Assembly (NCBI GenBank): GCA_964247055.1
Contig: OZ176050.1
Location: 13,082,001 to 13,146,000 of the forward strand
Reading direction: 5' to 3'
From: Paragordius varius
Taxonomy: Eukaryota; Animalia; Nematomorpha
DNA length: 64,000 bases
Notes under the pieces: generated by a model
What the model saw: the letters and a program-made list of their open reading frames with translations, nothing else
Databases searched by the model: none
What the model was told of the DNA's origin: nothing
Program-made: the position numbers and the translations under genes
In this document: piece after piece, positions 1-10,281 of the stretch
Layout: the number at the start of each line of letters is the position of its first letter
Numbering within the stretch: position 1 is the stretch's first letter

Positions 1-3000
1 AATTCAAAATATGTAACATATTTTAAATGATGAAGAATTATCTCATTGTTGGAAATATATGGTTGAATGAATTTTAGTTCAAAAATTATCAAATGCTGAA
101 AATACAGGGATTGTATGAAACACCAAAATATTAGGATGTATATATTGATTTTTGAATTTATAAAAATGATTTTTAGGAATATAGGGTATAATGTTGAAAA
201 TATCTAACTGTTTGTATAAAAAGTATGATTGATTGTTGGAAATGTATGGCTGATTGTTGGTAATGTAGGGCTGATTGTTGAAATTTCTGGGAAAGTATGA
301 CTGATTGATGATGTGAATTATTGTTGGAAGGTATCAGTGATTGTTGAAAATGTATGGTTAATTATTTTAAAGTAGAGTTGATAGTTTAAAAGTATGGTTG
401 ATTATGGGAAATATGTATAATTATTGAAATAATGGTTGATTGTTGAAAATGTATGGTTCATTGTTGGATAATAGGTTTGATTGTGGGAAAGTATATGTTG
501 TTGGCTATGCATGGCTGATTTGGGAATGTATGGTTGATTGTTTCAAAGTAGGTTGATAGTTGAAAAGTATGGATGATTGTGGGAAATATGGCTGATTGTT
601 GGGAATCTATGGTTGGAAATGTAAGATTTATGACTGGGAAAGTATAGCAAATTGTTGAAATGTATGGATAATTATTTGAATGTAAGGCTCATTGTTAATA
701 ATGTATAGCTAATTGTTGGAAATGTATGGTTGATAGTTGCGAAAAAATGGCTGATTGTTGGAAATGTATGGTTGATTGTTGGAAATGTATGGTTGATTGT
801 TGAAAATGTTTGATTGTCGGGAAAGTATGAATAAATGTGAAAATTTAAGGTTGATTGTTGGGAAAGTATGGCTGATTGTTGGAAATGTATAGTTGATTGT
901 TTCAAAGTAGGGTTGATATTTGAAAAGTAAGAATGATTGTGGGAAAGTATGGTTGATGGTTTAAAAGTATGGTTGATTGATGGGAAAGTATAACTAATTG
1001 TTGATAATTTCGGGTTGATTGTTGGGGAAGTATGGTGGATGGGTGGAAAGTATGGTTGATTGTTGGGAAAGTATGGTTGATGGTTAGGTATAGTTGATAT
1101 TTGGGAAAGTTTGGCTGATTGTTGAAAATCTATGGCTGATTGTTTGGAAAATACGACTGATTGTTGAAAATGTGTGGTTTATTGTTGGTTAAGTATGATT
1201 GATGGTTGGAAAGTATGGTTGATATTTGGGAAAATTTGGCTGATTGTTGAAAGTTGATTGTTGGGAAAATATGATTAATTGTTGAAAATTTTGGGTTGAT
1301 TGTTGGGAAAGTGTGACAGAATGGCTGATTGTTGAAAATGGGTGGTTGATTGTTGAGAATTTATGGTTGATTGTTGGGAAAGTATGACTGATTGTTGGAA
1401 ATGTGTGGTTGTTGCGAAAGTATGGTAGATGGGTGGAAATGGTTGATGGTTCGGAAGGTATAGCAGATTGTTGAAAATGTGTGGTGGTTTGTTGGGAAAG
1501 TATGGTTGATTGTTGGAAATGTATGACTCATTGTTGAAAATGTGTGGTTGATTGTTAAGAAAGTATGGTGGATGGGTGGAAAGTTTGGTTGATTTTTGGG
1601 AAGGTTTCGCTGATTGTTGAAAATGTGTGGTTGATAGTTCGGAAAGTATGGTTGGTGAAAAGTATGACAGATTGTTGAAAATGTGTGGTTGATTGTTGGG
1701 AAAATATGATAATTATTGATAATTTCGGGTTGATTGTTGAAGAAGTATGGTGGATGGATGGATATGGTTGATTGTTGGGAAAGTATGACTGATTGTTGTA
1801 AATGTGTTGTGGATTGTTGGAAAAGTATATTTGATTGTTAAAAATGTATGGTTGATTGTTGGGAAAGTATGGCTGATTGTTGAAATATGGATAATTATTT
1901 GAATGTAAAGCTCATTGTTGATAATGTATAGCTAATTGTTGGAAATGTATGGTTGATTGTTGGAAAAATTTGACTGATTGTTGAAAATGTGTGGTGAATA
2001 GTTGCGAAAAAATGGCTGATTGTTGAATATGTATGGTTGATTGTTGGAAATGTATGGTTGATTGTCGGGAAAGTATAAATAAATGTGGAAATTTAATGTT
2101 GATTGTTGGGAGAGTATGGCTGATTGTTGGAAATGTATAGTTGATTGTTTCAAAGTAGGGTTGATATTTGAAAAGTAAGAATGATTGTGGGAAAGTATGG
2201 CTGATTGTTGGTAATGCATTGGTGATTTTTGGAAATGTATGGTTGATTGTTGGGAAAGTATGGCTGATTGTTGAAAATGTGTGGTTGATTGTTAGGAAAG
2301 TATGAGTAATTGTTGAATTATGGTTGATTGTTGGGAAAGTATGGTGGATGTGTGGAAAGTATGGCTGATTGTAAGGAAAGTATTACTGATTGTTGAAAAT
2401 GTATGGTTGATTGTTGGGAGTATGGTTGATGGTTGGAAAGTATGGTTTATATTTGGGAATGTTTGGCTGATTGTTAAAAATGGTGGTTGATTGTTGTGAA
2501 ATTATGGTGTATGGTTTAAAGTTATGGTTGATTGTTGGGAAAGTATGACTGATTGTTGAAAATGTGTGGTTGATTCTTGGGAAAGTATGGTGGATGGGTA
2601 GAAAGTATGGGTGATTGTTGGGAAGGTATGGCTGATTGTTGAAAACGTGTGGTTGATTGTTGGGAAAGTATGACTAATTGTTGAATTATGGTTGATTGTT
2701 GGGAAAGTATGGTGGATGGGTGGAAAGTATGATTGATTGTTGAAAATGTGTGGTTGATTGTTAGGAAAATATGGTTAATTGTTGGGAAGGTATAACTGAT
2801 TGTTAAAATTTCCGGTTGATTGTTGTTAAAGTATGGTTGAATGTTGAAAATTTATGGTTGATTATTATGAAAGTATGGTTGGGAAACGGTTGATTGTTGG
2901 GAAAGTATGTCTGATTCTTAAAAATCTATGGTTGATTGTTAGAAAATATGGTTAATTGTTGGGAAGGTATGACTGATTGTTAAAATTTGCGGAGGATTGT

Positions 3001-3170
3001 TGGGACAGTATGGTTGATAATTGGAAATCTATGGTTGATTGTTGGTAGAATATGACGATTGTTGAAAATGTGTGATTGATTGTTGGGAAAGTATGGTTGA
3101 TTGTTGAAAATGTGTGGTTGATTGTTGGGAAAGTATGGTTGATGGTGGAAAGTAAGGTTCATGTGGGTGA
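1..3170. repeat. G/T-rich minisatellite, ~21-bp degenerate unit (GTTGATTGTTGGGAAAGTATG / GTTGATTGTTGAAAATGTGTG)
   Basis: Unit visibly repeated throughout; most degenerate in the first ~300 bp. Block ~665-950 recurs at ~1890-2200 (higher-order duplication). May extend left of the window. Confidence 0.95.
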
Positions 3171-3960
3171 TTGTCGGAAATATCTCAAACATCAGAAATC
3201 GTAACCATATTACTTGATCAAGGTTATAAAAAGCATTGGATAACAGATTCAATAAACAATATATTAAACCCAAGAGAAAAACAAAATCCGCCCGAAAAAT
3301 GTATTTGCCTGACTTATAACAATACATCCAAAAAAGTTAACAATATTATTACAAAAAAGGATGTACGTGTTTATTACAAACCACCAAAGAATTTATTAAG
3401 TTTGTTAAGACCACGCCGAGAACCAAAAAACGAATGTACAGTCTACCACAAAAGATGTAATGATTGTCCAGCACACTATATTGGACAATCTAAACGCCCT
3501 ATAAATATTAGAGAAAAAGAACACAACAGAAAAGGTTCGGCCATCTACGACCATTGCAACAATACAGGTCACACCTTCGGCCCAGCATCCATTGTAGCAC
3601 AAGCCGATAAATTGTCCGATAGGTTGATTTTGGAGGCTTGTTTTATCCATTCAAACAGTATACACCTCATCAACAGAAGAGAAGAAAGGAAAGATCTTAA
3701 CAAAGTCACAAAAGACTTCCTAAAAGAAACAGACTATTTCAAAATATTTACCACACCAAAGAAAAAACAATAACACATGCACACCACTTTGCATTTTTAT
3801 GTTACTATAATTTATAATTATATTTTTCAAATTTTGTTTTAATTAATCTTATTATTATTTTCTTTTATTTTAGTTAATCCATTGAAAAAGATACTCTCAT
3901 GTATCGAAAATTTTGGATATAGTTTGAATTCAATAAATTTTACGAGAATACAAATTATTA
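3171..3960 (+). mobile_element. 5'-truncated Penelope-like retroelement (GIY-YIG endonuclease end plus AT-rich 3' region)
   Basis: ORF 3171-3773 has TVY..CNDC..HYIGQSKR...REKEH...IYDHC..TGH...DRLILEA, the GIY-YIG domain with CCHH motif typical of PLEs. The TTG start is a truncation junction, not a true start. No RT domain present. Confidence 0.85.
3877..3918 (+). ncRNA. Minimal type-I hammerhead ribozyme-like motif (U3-A8 core variant) in the PLE 3' region
   Basis: ATCCA-TTGAAAAA-GATAC(tctcat)GTATC-GAAAATTT-TGGAT: stem I ATCCA/TGGAT, stem II GATAC/GTATC, GAAA, palindromic AATT stem III. Confidence 0.55.
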
Positions 3961-4200
3961 TTTTAACAATGACTGAATCTTGGGAAAAATTACTAAAAAT
4001 GTATGTTTGATTGTTGGCATATGGTTAATTGTTGGAAATGTATGGATTGTTATAATATGGTTAATTTTTGGAAATGTATACATGACTGTTAGAAATAAAT
4101 GCTGAATTTTGGAAATGTATGGTTAATTGTTGGCAACAACAAAATATGACAAATGACTTATTTTGATTTTGGAATTATATGGATGATTGTTGAAAACCTA
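3961..4200. repeat. Degenerate continuation of the 21-bp minisatellite
   Basis: Units such as ATGGTTAATTGTTGGAAATGTATGG resume after the PLE fragment. Confidence 0.7.
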
Positions 4201-4723
4201 TCAGAAAAACATTGATTCTGTGCATATGAAATCAAATTTTTCAGTGGAAGATGCCATCTTTAAGTTTTGGAATCCAATATGATTGAATATGTTATATATT
4301 TTTCAATTTTAAATGTTAAATTTTTGTGTGAATTAATTTGAAACGTAATAAAATAGGAACCTTCAAGCGGACATTCAATTATTTTCTGCATTTAATGCAA
4401 AGAACCTTGTCTGAAATAATACCAATCAAAAATAAATAAAAGATAAAGGCTAAGCATTTTGGAATAGAAGACATGTCTCCCAAAATATTGCATATATCCA
4501 ACTTTTTTTATTTTGTCAACGGTCGTACATTGACTATTAAAATTCAATAAATTATTAATCTTATATATATGAACATCAAATATACAATATTGAGTAATAT
4601 TTATTTAATATTTTTTGAAGATTATTTATAGAAACGAAATATTTACAATTCAATAAAATATTGAAAAATTCCAATTAATTCAATCAATATATTCATTAAT
4701 GTGGGCCACATTAGTCAAAAAAT

Positions 4724-5416
4724 CTAGCTATTTGGTTTCCATCTATAGATAATAGGAAAAAGTTTATCGCCACACTCCACATCATCTGGTGTGATATTAA
4801 AATATTCCTTTTTCCAGATGCAAACTTTAGCTTTAAGTTCATCAATTATCAGATTAAGGAGTTCAGAAGATCCAGTTCGACGGGGAGTAGAAACAGCTAC
4901 TAATATACTAGGTTCATTTTTATCTGTGTACACATCACCTATTCTATGTACAAGTGCGACATTACATACATTGTTGGTATGTAAATTATCCGCAACTTTA
5001 TAGTTATCATATAATTTTTGAGCATTTTTAGCAATATCATACATTTGTTTAAGAGCCATTGGCACATAAGCTTCATAATACAGACGAAAACATGTCCAAT
5101 TTCTCATATTTCTATTCGGAATTATGTACCTATTTATCATATCTTTTATATGTGTACAATTAATATTAGACATGTTGGATGTTTCATTGCAACAAGGGCA
5201 AATAATGTTATTTTTGATAGATATTTGAGATGTGGATATTACATCCGCCCTCGGATAGCCCAAAAACACAAATTGCGCACCACACGTAGGTGTGTTAAGT
5301 AATGCCAAAGTTTGATTAACATTAATAGGGTGAGAGGTTAATTTGATATAAATGTTATCTTTAAAAATTAAATCTTCGCTCTGACAATCGTCATTCATCA
5401 TCTTCATTATGTTCAT
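4724..5416 (-). CDS. MOCS2B: Molybdopterin synthase catalytic subunit (MOCS2B/MoaE family), intronless
   Basis: 230-aa ORF with CGAQFVFLG, LYYEAYVPMALKQM, HRIG, IIDELKAKVCIWKKEYF motifs. The start could be any of the ATGs at 5416, 5407, 5401 or 5398. Confidence 0.92.
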   Translation of the reverse strand: MNIMKMMNDDCQSEDLIFKDNIYIKLTSHPINVNQTLALLNTPTCGAQFVFLGYPRADVISTSQISIKNNIICPCCNETSNMSNINCTHIKDMINRYIIPNRNMRNWTCFRLYYEAYVPMALKQMYDIAKNAQKLYDNYKVADNLHTNNVCNVALVHRIGDVYTDKNEPSILVAVSTPRRTGSSELLNLIIDELKAKVCIWKKEYFNITPDDVECGDKLFPIIYRWKPNS

Positions 5417-6068
5417 CCACTAAATGATTCAAACTAATTTGATTTCCAGGTTTATTAAATGGAGTAACCTTATTCTCAAGTGTATTAGGTTCATTTATTT
5501 CAGTTTCCTCGGATAATAAAATACTAGAGGGTATAATTTTATTTTGTCGTCTGCTGCTACTTGTATATGAGCCTTTCTTAAAAATGATCGGCTTTTTAGC
5601 ATTGTTATTAGGGAAATCTTTTATAATGTTATCAAAATCATCAATAACGGAATCTATTTGTTTTTCCCGCAAACTTTGAATCAAAGCATTAGCCGCTCTG
5701 GTATTTTGCTCATTACTCATTTCATCAATGTTGGATAAATCATATTTGACGCTAATGGATTTAGATACGGAATAGTTAATTATGTCTTCAGTTATGGCGG
5801 CCTCATCAACATAATGATTCTCTTGTGAATTTAACACATTTTCTGTTTCTATGGTATCTTCATCAGGTTGTTTACGTTTTTTAAGTATGGGTTTGAGATT
5901 TACATTGGGTTCGGATGTTAATATGGCTGGTATTTCTATTTCATCATCACTCAAAAATTCTTTATCAAGGGTATTTTTGCTAAGATTTTCATTAATAAGA
6001 TTTCCAAAAATATTATGGCAACGGTTTGTAAAAGCTTCTTTATCCCAAACATTGGAAGTTGAATCCAT
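5391..6068 (-). CDS. TSSC4: TSSC4-like U5 snRNP chaperone, intronless
   Basis: 225-aa, largely low-complexity ORF with FTNRCHNIFGNL, VKYDLSNIDEMSNEQNTRAANALI and a C-terminal LNHL+acidic tail. These resemble recalled TSSC4 motifs ([36 protein letters not shown]). Confidence 0.7.
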   Translation of the reverse strand: MDSTSNVWDKEAFTNRCHNIFGNLINENLSKNTLDKEFLSDDEIEIPAILTSEPNVNLKPILKKRKQPDEDTIETENVLNSQENHYVDEAAITEDIINYSVSKSISVKYDLSNIDEMSNEQNTRAANALIQSLREKQIDSVIDDFDNIIKDFPNNNAKKPIIFKKGSYTSSSRRQNKIIPSSILLSEETEINEPNTLENKVTPFNKPGNQISLNHLVDEHNEDDE

Positions 6069-6078
6069 AATTTATTAA

Positions 6079-6369
6079 CTATCCACCACCGACTGGAGGT
6101 ATTAATGCGATTTCATCATTATCGGATATGGTGAACAAATTATCGGTGTGAGATTCCAAGTAATTTTGATTGTGCACAATTAGAAATGTGTAATCAGACA
6201 AACACGGAAAATTTGCGTATAAAATTGATTTTAATTCAGCTAAAAATTACTAATTTTAGGTACTATATCGTATCCGTGAAGGTATTGTTAATTCTAACCC
6301 ACTCCCAATAATTTCTTTGATGTTTGCAAAAGTTAAAATATTAACATGAACAAATTTAACATCTGACAT
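6079..6369 (-). CDS. MOCS2A: Molybdopterin synthase sulfur carrier subunit (MOCS2A/MoaD), 2 exons; absent from the ORF track
   Basis: Exons 6369-6264 and 6239-6079 around a 24-nt GT-AG intron containing three in-frame stops. Product (88 aa): MSDVKFVHVNILTFANIKEIIGSGLELTIPSRIRYTELKSILYANFPCLSDYTFLIVHNQNYLESHTDNLFTISDNDEIALIPPVGGG*, ending in the diagnostic EIALIPPV-GG. Confidence 0.88.
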
Positions 6370-6425
6370 ATATATGTGGTGCGTTTTTAAGTTAGTCAGT
6401 TATACGTACCTGTAAAAAGGTAACA

Positions 6426-6687
6426 ATGCCGGTATTTTTTGATTTTAAATATTTAGGTTTACAAATTTAAGGTAGATATGACATGTCAAGGATGTGTTAA
6501 TCCGATTCGGAATGTTTTGTTAAAGCTTGAAAGTAAATTCATAATTACATTATAATCGTAAGATATTAAGGAACAAGATATTCAAATCAATTTAAACGAC
6601 AAAACTGTTACGGTTAAAACTGATCTTTCACAGGATGTTGTGCGCAATCAAATCGCAAAAACAGGGAAAACACCCATATCTCTATGA
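6426..6687 (+). CDS. ATOX1: Copper chaperone ATOX1 (HMA domain), 3 exons; absent from the ORF track
   Basis: Exons 6426-6431, 6457-6532, 6563-6687; introns of 25 and 30 nt. Product MPVYKFKVDMTCQGCVNPIRNVLLKLENIKEQDIQINLNDKTVTVKTDLSQDVVRNQIAKTGKTPISL* with MTCxxC and KTGK motifs. Confidence 0.92.
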
Positions 6688-6775: not shown

Positions 6776-9700
6776 TTATTTTTGTTTTGTATCTTGGTTA
6801 TTTGTGGCCATATTTATGGGAACCGAAATAATTCCATCTGATATATCCGTCATTCTAGGGAAGGATATTTTCTTGGATATCAAATCAGTTTGACACCATA
6901 ATAAAAATTTAAGGATGTGACTCAAACTAGATTCTTCTTTGTCGTAATGTGAAAATTGGGCTGGCGTTGAATTTGAGGCTATTAAGTTTATATAAAATCT
7001 TAAAAAATATTCAAAGTTCATAAAACTCACTGTTTTTATAATATTAATTTTAGGAGATATGTTTAAACTTGTTAAAAATAAAAATATTTGCCTAATTTCT
7101 TAATAGGTCATTTTTAAGATAATTATTTATTTTAACCATTACAATATGAGAAAAAACTTTTAAATATCTCAATAATTATATTGATCAAATATTAAAAATT
7201 GAAAATATTAAAACATAAAAACTAAAGGATAAAATTGTTTTATAAGTACAGCCATAATTTTTAACCCATTTATTATAAAATGTATAATTGAGTCTTTAAC
7301 CAATTTACATCTTTATTCCATATTTTGCAACCGAAACATTTGGTTATTCTAAAATAAATCGAGGTTTAAAGGAAGTAGTTGTCTTTATACAATATTTGTT
7401 TCATTTAGTTTTGATAAGTTTTATATATGTAATTTTAGCTTAAAAAAAATTTTTAATATAAAAAATACCGGAATTTTGAATAGCAGTATTTAGGGTTGTG
7501 TTTGGGATTAAGGGTGCCGTTGATTCAAGCAAGGGGGTAGGCGGTGTTTCAAAACTCGAAATCGCATGTACAATGTTACTTGCAATCTGGGAATAGAATG
7601 GAAATTTTAAAATATTTTTAACAATAAAATATTGTTAAAATGGCTGTTATTCCAATTAAATTTATTTCATCTTAGATTGGACAGTATTATCATTTAAAGT
7701 TTTTTTGAAAAATAATAAAGAAGATACTTGTCCTAAAATTAATATAATTAAGCATTACGTGTGTGTATGAAATGTTTAATGACATTTTTGACTTATTAGT
7801 AGCGTTTATTATTTCCGAATTCGTTTGAAAACATATCAAAGAAAAATGGAAATTCAAAAAAGTTAACATTATATATACATAATGTCTAAGCCTAAATGGA
7901 GTTCACTACGAATATTTGCAATATAATGTTATAAATAAGTTCTAATAATTATTATGTCTTAAATTTACAATCTTATAAGATATACCATAAATAAAGGGTT
8001 CGATTGAAAACACCAACCGATTTTATCGTGAATATTCCTCTATATTATCAAATTATATTTCTATTCATTCTAAATCGAATGAAATCAAATACTCATGTTT
8101 TACAGTACTTATACAATCATTCCTTAGATTTTAAGTTAAAGGAATGCTATATGGCCTTAACAATCTTTTATACTTTTTTAACGTAATGTTTTAATAAAAT
8201 ATGTAATACAGTTTAACACTCGGGTGGATATATTTTTTGTTTTTGTATTAACACTGTCAACCATAGATAGCAAATATTTTTTAAAAATAAAAAATATAGC
8301 AAAATGATTATGTCTTTGATTGTGTTCCTTTTTTTATTATTAGGGTAAAATAGATAATCTATTAGTAATTTAAATACTTCTTATCATTTGAAAACATTTT
8401 TTTACCATTTCTCCTACATCTGTTAAAGGCTATCAAAAACAAATCTTATAAATCATTTAATATAGGAATGTTTTATTATTGCAATTATAATACAGCCAAA
8501 ATTGATGAATGATTTAATTAGAGTAAGTTTTCGATTACTACAAGTAATCTATCTTTGTCAAACGTAAAAAACAAAATTAAAAACAAAAGATAAAAACTTT
8601 TTGTCTATGATTATGGTGCAACAATTGACCAAAGGGACATTTGTCTGGATCATCGAAAGCCATGAGAGCCAACGTTTTTTCCACCTGATCCATCATATGG
8701 GCATTGAGTTCGCCATATTCAGCCAAATTATTTTGGGCAAATAGAAGGGCTTCCTCAATCTTACGATTCCGGATTAATTCAATCAATTGTTGTTGCTAAA
8801 AAATGGATGAAAAACAATTACGATATTTTTTAAACTTAAATGTAAAATTGTAACTAACATGCCGACTTTTAGTTGGGATTTGTTTTAAAAGAAACTCTGA
8901 TTTTTACTTTAAACTTTACTGTATATAGCTAATTTAATGATCTGTTGCGAAAATTTTATAACTTAGTCTACAATATTAAAACATCAATAATTTATAACCA
9001 ATCCAATCTTTCAAAATGACAAAAATATTAAAAAAGAGGTATTCACTTGTAATTCAAAATAGAGATTTCGATGGTTATCAAACAGTTCAGGGTAATGTTC
9101 ATTTATCCATTCCACAGCCTGTGGAATATTACCAGATTCAATAAGAGTGCGTATTTCTAATTTCTCTTCCAAACATTTTATATCAACGTCTGGTACAAGT
9201 CCGGATTCTTCAACAAAAGATTCGGCTGCATCTTTGTAACCCTCTGAAATGAAATAATAAATTTAATTTGAGTTTTAGGTGTGATAAATTAATTGCTATA
9301 AACGATGGGTGTCTAACATGCCGCAAAAATTTAATTGTTATATACAGAATCAAAATTCTAACTCTACAAAAATATTTTTTATCAAACATAATTAAATTCA
9401 AATTTAAAATTAATACTATTATTAATATTCCCTTTGAAATATTATTTTGAATATTATACTTATTCTCAAAAATTGGCTTTACATCATTGATTGTTAGATA
9501 AATGGTCATTTAGTTTGGTTGTTAAATAATTATTATCACATTTTATCCTTTCATTGGATATAAAGTAATATGGGTTTTAAAGGGCAAAAATTGATATTTG
9601 CAAGATATTTAGACAAAAATGCGGCCCTCTAAGCCATTTATGTTGGTGATCCCTATTATAAACTACATTAAACTAACAATTAAAATACAAGTCCCTTTTT

Positions 9701-10207: not shown

Positions 10208-10281
10208 ATGACGGATTAAAAATCCGATGTTTGATTGAATGTACCCTTATTCAGTTGTTTTGCGATTTTGAATTTTTTTAC

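Follow-up and report, generated by a model that had tools for sequence, protein, structure and literature searches.

A TSSC4-like gene between the MOCS2A and MOCS2B reading frames of Paragordius varius: a candidate three-gene transcription unit

Three reading frames at the MOCS2 locus

The stretch of DNA analysed here (hereafter, the window) comprises 64,000 nucleotides (nt) from Paragordius varius (Nematomorpha; GenBank assembly GCA_964247055.1, contig OZ176050.1, positions 13,082,001 to 13,146,000 of the forward strand) and contains, on its minus strand at 4724-6369, three head-to-tail open reading frames (ORFs) read from the sequence: the ORF of the small subunit of molybdopterin synthase, MOCS2A, a middle ORF resembling TSSC4, and the ORF of the large subunit of the same enzyme, MOCS2B. 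MOCS2A begins at an ATG at 6369 and consists of exon 1 (6264..6369), a predicted 24-nt micro-intron (6240..6263; GTACC to TTTTTAG; 21% GC), and exon 2 (6079..6239), which ends ...PPVGGG, followed by a TAG at 6081..6079. A 10-nt spacer, TTAATAAATT (6078..6069), separates the MOCS2A stop from the ATG of the middle ORF (5391..6068), which is intronless, encodes 225 residues, and extends from ATG 6068 to TGA 5393..5391. MOCS2B (MoaE; 4724..5416; stop 4726..4724) is also intronless and encodes 230 residues; its four candidate in-frame ATGs, at 5416, 5407, 5401, and 5398, all sit within 26 nt of the 3' end of the middle ORF and give overlaps of 26, 17, 11, and 8 nt, respectively, the 8-nt overlap being the start/stop sequence ATGAATGA. 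The overlap segment (5391..5416, minus strand) is dual-coding, with the acidic tail and TGA of the middle ORF in one frame and the MOCS2B ATGs in the +1 frame. The 662 nt from the MOCS2A stop to the MOCS2B start are filled by the 225-codon ORF, and, the predicted micro-intron apart, there is no non-coding DNA inside the unit beyond the 10-nt spacer. The sole non-coding DNA upstream of the unit is a 56-nt region (6370..6425), likewise read from the sequence, that lies between the divergent ATGs of MOCS2A and the copper-chaperone gene ATOX1 and contains a TATA-like GTATAA and a pyrimidine-rich CAG, the latter ~42 nt 5' of the MOCS2A ATG. Because this gap is only 56 nt, the MOCS2A 5' untranslated region (UTR) would be very short or would overlap ATOX1.

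Four sequencing runs, X1-X4, behave as DNA, covering introns and intergenic DNA evenly. The junction between the middle ORF and MOCS2B is crossed by contigs of runs X1, X2, and X3, and the spacer between MOCS2A and the middle ORF is crossed by one contig of run X1; these three runs may be the assembly's own source samples. The DNA-run contigs carry a 1-nt deletion at spacer position 6069 in one haplotype.

Predicted splicing of MOCS2A yields a product of 88 residues with Gly-Gly-Gly directly before the TAG, and the C-terminal Gly-Gly characteristic of MoaD/ThiS small subunits, the thiocarboxylate carrier, is therefore present. Exon 2 alone matches the Pfam ThiS profile (PF02597) with 28 bits and E = 3.3e-6, above the cut-off of 22.5 bits. 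Residues 7/8-88 of the spliced product align to MoaD domains without a gap across the exon junction, and this gapless alignment supports the interpretation of the 24-nt GT..AG segment as a predicted micro-intron; left unspliced, the segment would bring in three stop codons. A 47-nt GT..AG segment over the MOCS2A ATG was rejected as an intron because its removal would leave no in-frame start.

MOCS2B matches the Pfam MoaE profile (PF02391) with 60.8 bits, compared with a cut-off of 23.4, and E = 1.8e-16, and it keeps the active-site lysine motif (IWKKE), of which W201, K202, K203, and E204 are invariant among MOCS2B and six aligned MoaE relatives. The protein is strongly diverged: the best relatives found in protein searches are ~30% identical, none of them is close, and in exact-protein look-ups neither MOCS2B nor the product of the middle ORF is on record. 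Residues 57-100 (5117-5248, minus strand) form a lineage-specific, 44-residue Cys-rich insertion with the pattern CPCC...C.H that is absent from all six of the aligned relatives and that may be a metal-binding loop. Smaller insertions occur at residues 138-149 and near the C terminus. We considered, and rejected, the possibility that the large insertion is an unspliced in-frame intron: no GT..AG candidate spanning the insertion is in phase, and removal of an in-phase 18-nt candidate would take out six residues only.

In all three ORFs, GC content decreases in the order first, second, third codon position. An initial annotation of the locus, made from the sequence, had identified the two outer ORFs as MOCS2A and MOCS2B and had described near-zero spacing among the three; both profile assignments pass their cut-offs, and every ORF position holds on re-reading of the sequence. 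We conclude that MOCS2A, the middle ORF, and MOCS2B are shown to be intact, constrained protein-coding ORFs.

The middle reading frame and its resemblance to TSSC4

At the local base composition, a stop-free frame of 225 codons has a chance probability of ~6e-9. GC contents at codon positions 1, 2, and 3 of the middle ORF are 0.41, 0.28, and 0.23, the same trend as in its two neighbours. The differences between DNA-run haplotypes that are listed for the middle ORF comprise six single-nucleotide polymorphisms (SNPs), five of them synonymous and one changing N127 to T, and two indels, of -3 and +3 nt, both multiples of three. ORF length, codon-position GC content, and SNP pattern exclude a chance ORF or non-coding spacer, and we conclude that the middle ORF is a real protein-coding gene. 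Within it, at 5739-5963, two haplotype contigs in runs X1 and X2 differ, without gaps, at 12 of 225 positions (~5%), an unusually high local heterozygosity.

The initial annotation had named the middle ORF TSSC4, a spliceosome-assembly factor known to bind the U5 snRNP proteins PRPF8, BRR2, and EFTUD2, and here the results are divided. Among 24,736 Pfam families the top match is indeed TSSC4 (PF15264), with 15.3-15.9 bits and E = 0.015-0.025, but this lies below the gathering score of 27, and the match covers only residues 107-135 of the ORF and positions 77-106 of the profile; the only other Pfam match, SIMPL, is far weaker (E = 0.56). To retrieve a genuine TSSC4 for comparison, we used as probe a profile in which the middle ORF was aligned with a 31-residue TSSC4 motif. 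The probe matched residues 163-189 of human TSSC4 in PDB entry 7px3, which confirms the motif as genuine, and it retrieved one database protein, naked mole-rat TSSC4 (P0076), which matches PF15264 at 9e-35 and which, it should be noted, was obtained through a profile containing this motif. Compared with P0076 by BLASTP, the middle ORF alone gives E = 1e-6, with residues 13-179 aligned to residues 60-202, which supports the TSSC4 assignment that the family profile leaves below threshold.

Three motifs, FxxRxHxIFxxL, KYxLxx[VI]xExSxxxNxxAAxA, and [VI][VI]FxK, are colinear in the middle ORF and P0076, and a possible fourth, judged by eye, pairs ISLNHL with VELTHL, each followed by acidic residues. 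The local alignment of the two proteins has z = 9.1 (1000 shuffles). The C-terminal part of the alignment, to which the probe motif does not extend, is equalled by only 5 of 1000 shuffles; its N-terminal part, taken alone, is not significant (84 of 1000 shuffles). Other searches with the middle ORF gave no further relative: a word-indexed protein search returned none, phmmer against the PDB returned nothing, and the ESM Atlas gave no match above 0.73. Against 1.8 billion representative proteins, phmmer returned a single repetitive protein of 2285 residues, matched in 17 stretches, which we treated as a composition artefact. On evidence that is mixed but positive overall, the middle ORF appears to be a diverged, shortened, fast-evolving TSSC4 homologue that does not reach the curated family threshold; for brevity we refer to it below as TSSC4.

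Candidate routes to transcription and translation

With spacings of at most 10 nt, or overlaps, the three genes cannot avoid sharing transcribed DNA. The initial annotation had stated that internal promoters would find no space outside coding sequence, and the layout agrees: a spacer of 10 nt is followed by an overlap of 8-26 nt. At the other end of the unit, the first canonical poly(A) signals 3' of the TSSC4 stop are an ATTAAA at 4609 and an AATAAA at 4605 (4600..4609, minus strand), ~115 nt past the MOCS2B stop, and a minus-strand hexamer scan detects no canonical AATAAA or ATTAAA between 5456 and 4609. Because no canonical signal occurs from the TSSC4 stop to 4609, a messenger RNA (mRNA) that contains the whole of TSSC4 and ends at a canonical signal must carry all of MOCS2B. 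Farther upstream, the spacer itself holds a canonical AATAAA (6076..6071), which makes a separate short MOCS2A mRNA possible, and three further AATAAA lie within the TSSC4 ORF, 5' of its stop.

The reading that we favour, with a probability of roughly 0.4, is that the three genes form a co-transcribed unit expressed from the region upstream of MOCS2A and that MOCS2B is translated by termination-reinitiation. One primary transcript would span MOCS2A, TSSC4, and MOCS2B; MOCS2A and TSSC4 would be read off the same mRNA, with the MOCS2A ATG probably near its 5' end; and some transcripts may end just past MOCS2A, by use of the AATAAA in the spacer.

The contexts of the start codons bear on how the first two ORFs could be read. 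Around the MOCS2A ATG, positions -3 and +4 are both T, which makes a weak context; the corresponding bases at the TSSC4 ATG are A and G, a strong one. Each of the four ATGs between them opens an ORF of 4-9 codons that closes before 6068. Given a weak first ATG, four tiny closed ORFs, and a strong second ATG, leaky scanning could reach TSSC4: ribosomes that skip the MOCS2A ATG would meet the four tiny ORFs and then the strong TSSC4 ATG. The TSSC4 ATG could thus plausibly be served as the B ORF of human MOCS2 is, by leaky scanning. MOCS2B, by comparison, lies beyond leaky scanning, because within the middle ORF 18 ATGs, versus 12 expected, separate its own ATGs from that of TSSC4, a count that backs the claim of the initial annotation that leaky scanning cannot easily serve MOCS2B.

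Human MOCS2 is bicistronic, with its B ORF reached by leaky scanning (Stallmeyer et al. 1999; reviewed in PMC9607355). The nematomorph locus resembles it in having a small-subunit ORF 5' of a large-subunit ORF on the same strand at one locus, a small subunit that ends in Gly-Gly, and an upstream ATG weak enough for leaky scanning. It differs in that the human ORFs overlap by 77 nt with nothing between them, whereas here they are separated by 662 nt with a third, unrelated ORF and 18 ATGs; a human-type bicistron, with contiguous or overlapping A and B ORFs and a B ORF served by leaky scanning, is not what is found here.

Under the favoured reading, ribosomes that have finished TSSC4 most likely resume at one of the four clustered ATGs over its stop and translate MOCS2B by termination-reinitiation. 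Reinitiation calls for a start near the upstream stop, and the ATGs at 5416-5398 lie beside the stop at 5393..5391, 3 to 21 nt 5' of its first base. Termination-reinitiation of this kind operates in calicivirus VP2 and influenza B BM2, where it relies on an upstream element that binds ribosomal RNA. The viral systems and the present locus, exemplified by ATGAATGA, are alike in having downstream starts within a few nucleotides of the upstream stop; they differ in that no RNA structure stood out here, where no systematic search for complementarity to ribosomal RNA was made. A frameshift fusion of the middle ORF to MOCS2B was also considered and set aside, the available window being only 26 nt and containing no supporting signal.

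Several observations weigh against the favoured reading. None of the words sampled from the locus is present in the labelled RNA runs of the species. Predicted RNA folds at the two junctions are no more stable than those of shuffled sequences, with z = +1.33 for the overlap of the middle ORF and MOCS2B. After an ORF as long as 225 codons, ribosomes normally reinitiate poorly unless a dedicated element assists them. Use of the spacer AATAAA would end the MOCS2A mRNA within the first codons of TSSC4. Finally, neighbouring genes in other orientations are packed just as tightly, with 56 nt between the divergent ATGs of ATOX1 and MOCS2A and 88 nt between the convergent stops of ATOX1 (plus strand, 6426-6687, stop 6685-6687, micro-introns of 25 nt at 6432-6456 and 30 nt at 6533-6562) and GID8/TWA1 (minus strand, stop 6778..6776). 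Tight spacing among such neighbours implies that promoters and 3' ends can lie in adjacent genes, which weakens the argument for a shared mRNA.

The same neighbours favour an explanation in which the locus holds three independent, overlapping transcription units, with the TSSC4 promoter inside MOCS2A, the MOCS2B promoter inside TSSC4, very short 5' UTRs, and 3' ends that run into the next gene. To the divergent ATOX1/MOCS2A pair and the convergent GID8/ATOX1 pair can be added the divergent ATGs of GID8 and ASH2L, only 75 nt apart, and from these tiny intergenic gaps it is evident that promoters here need very little room. The AATAAA signals of GID8 and ATOX1 (~6745 on the plus strand, 6752 on the minus strand) are interleaved, so that the 3' UTRs of these two genes must overlap, and the AATAAA straight after the MOCS2A stop suits a separate short MOCS2A mRNA. 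Even with independent promoters, however, no canonical poly(A) signal would be available to a TSSC4 mRNA short of the far side of MOCS2B, and we consider this explanation rather unlikely.

A further possibility accepts co-transcription but replaces reinitiation with spliced-leader (SL) trans-splicing: the locus would be an operon in which leaders for TSSC4 and MOCS2B are added at AG acceptors within upstream coding sequence, and each precursor mRNA would give only some of the products, with the 3' end of one mRNA lying past the acceptor of the next. Candidate acceptors are present at each gene. An acceptor-like ATACCTCCAG (6092-6101) lies 24 nt 5' of the TSSC4 ATG; ATCATTTAG, which resembles the micro-intron acceptors ATATTTAG and ATTTTTAG, lies 3 nt 5' of the first MOCS2B ATG; TTACCTTTTTACAG (6411-6424) lies 42 nt 5' of the MOCS2A ATG; and comparable motifs are found 5' of the ATGs of ATOX1 and ASH2L. 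Operons resolved in this way are known from the sister phylum, Nematoda. On the other side, DNA with 25% GC, a composition in keeping with the 26.9% reported for the hairworm Gordionus, abounds in T-rich AG motifs; the conserved Pro-Pro-Val codons account for most of the CCAG 5' of TSSC4; and GID8 has no such motif. To our knowledge, neither an SL RNA nor a transcript carrying a leader has been described in this lineage; a literature search found no report of trans-splicing or operons in Nematomorpha, and an Rfam scan of the window returned nothing, and hence no SL RNA, although a single window says little on this point. In the SL trans-spliced operons of nematodes and tunicates, unrelated genes on the same strand, with minimal or no spacer, are co-transcribed. 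The present locus is like them in its same-strand, unrelated, minimally spaced, and presumably co-transcribed genes, and is unlike them in that its ORFs overlap, so that upstream 3' ends and downstream acceptors would interleave. We judge an SL-resolved operon to be unlikely.

Considered across genes, TACC-(Y/A)n-CAG motifs occur 24-42 nt 5' of the TSSC4, MOCS2A, and ASH2L ATGs (6092-6101, 6411-6424, and 10246-10260, respectively), and a TTTTTAAG/TTAG/TCAG run occurs 5' of the ATOX1 ATG. These motifs, seen in few genes, could be acceptors of 5' UTR introns or of trans-splicing.

The last explanation that we weighed is that the locus is still bicistronic, a 40-nt intron removing the TSSC4 stop to give a TSSC4-MOCS2B fusion, with MOCS2B never made alone. 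Enumeration of in-frame GT/GC..AG pairs does yield a 40-nt GT..AG segment (5381..5420, minus strand; GTGGAT to TGTCAG) whose removal would join TSSC4 and MOCS2B in frame and which begins directly 3' of the last TSSC4-like motif, ISLNHL. There are precedents for such a fusion. Expression of MOCS1B depends on a splice that joins it to MOCS1A (PMC9607355, citing Gray and Nicholls 2000); as there, the downstream ORF here has no obvious independent translation and a stop-removing splice would solve the problem, but MOCS1 splicing is documented, whereas here the splice is a sequence possibility with an atypical donor. The Drosophila Mocs2 transcript is bicistronic, and its Mocs2B is fused to an unrelated MBIP domain (PMC5817353); the fly and nematomorph loci are both ecdysozoan loci with both subunits (on one transcript in the fly) and an unrelated nuclear-complex protein attached, but the fly module is fused in frame, whereas here the extra protein has an ORF of its own, placed between those of the two subunits, if the 40-nt segment is not an intron. 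The properties of the segment speak against it. Its donor, GTGGAT, is unlike the GTA of the three micro-introns at the locus, its GC content is 38% versus 12-21%, and its length of 40 nt differs from theirs (24, 25, and 30 nt); the correct phase has a one-in-three chance for any GT..AG pair; and the four in-frame ATGs that head MOCS2B would be pointless. A 49-nt alternative (5468..5420) would remove a TSSC4-like motif. We regard the fusion as very unlikely.

Downstream of the unit, a satellite array at 320-4133, with a 21-nt repeat unit, ATTGTTGGAAAGTATGGTTG, and a GC skew of ~+0.8, ends ~600 nt 3' of MOCS2B; the depth of satellite words in runs X1, X2, and X4 is ~200-300 times that of single-copy sequence.

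Significance of a third gene within MOCS2

The initial annotation knew of no description of this arrangement, and our literature search likewise found no paper in which MOCS2 and TSSC4 are neighbours. The locus is a variant of the known bicistronic MOCS2 gene or of an animal operon, in an arrangement for which we found no published description. A stronger form of the favoured reading would hold that the species routinely makes true polycistronic mature mRNAs and that, at this locus, a tricistronic message yields three proteins, with TSSC4 taken up between the two cistrons of the ancient MOCS2 gene and the last of the three read by termination-reinitiation at the ATG cluster; this stronger form we regard as doubtful.

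MOCS2 is a textbook example of a conserved animal bicistronic gene. With a third, unrelated gene between its cistrons, leaky scanning no longer suffices, and another route, such as reinitiation, trans-splicing, an internal promoter, or splice fusion, is needed. In this respect the locus offers a small natural experiment on the ways in which a distal cistron is reached by ribosomes or RNA processing in animals. If it is operon-like or polycistronic, it would be relevant to the timing of the origin of SL trans-splicing and of operons among nematodes and their sister group.

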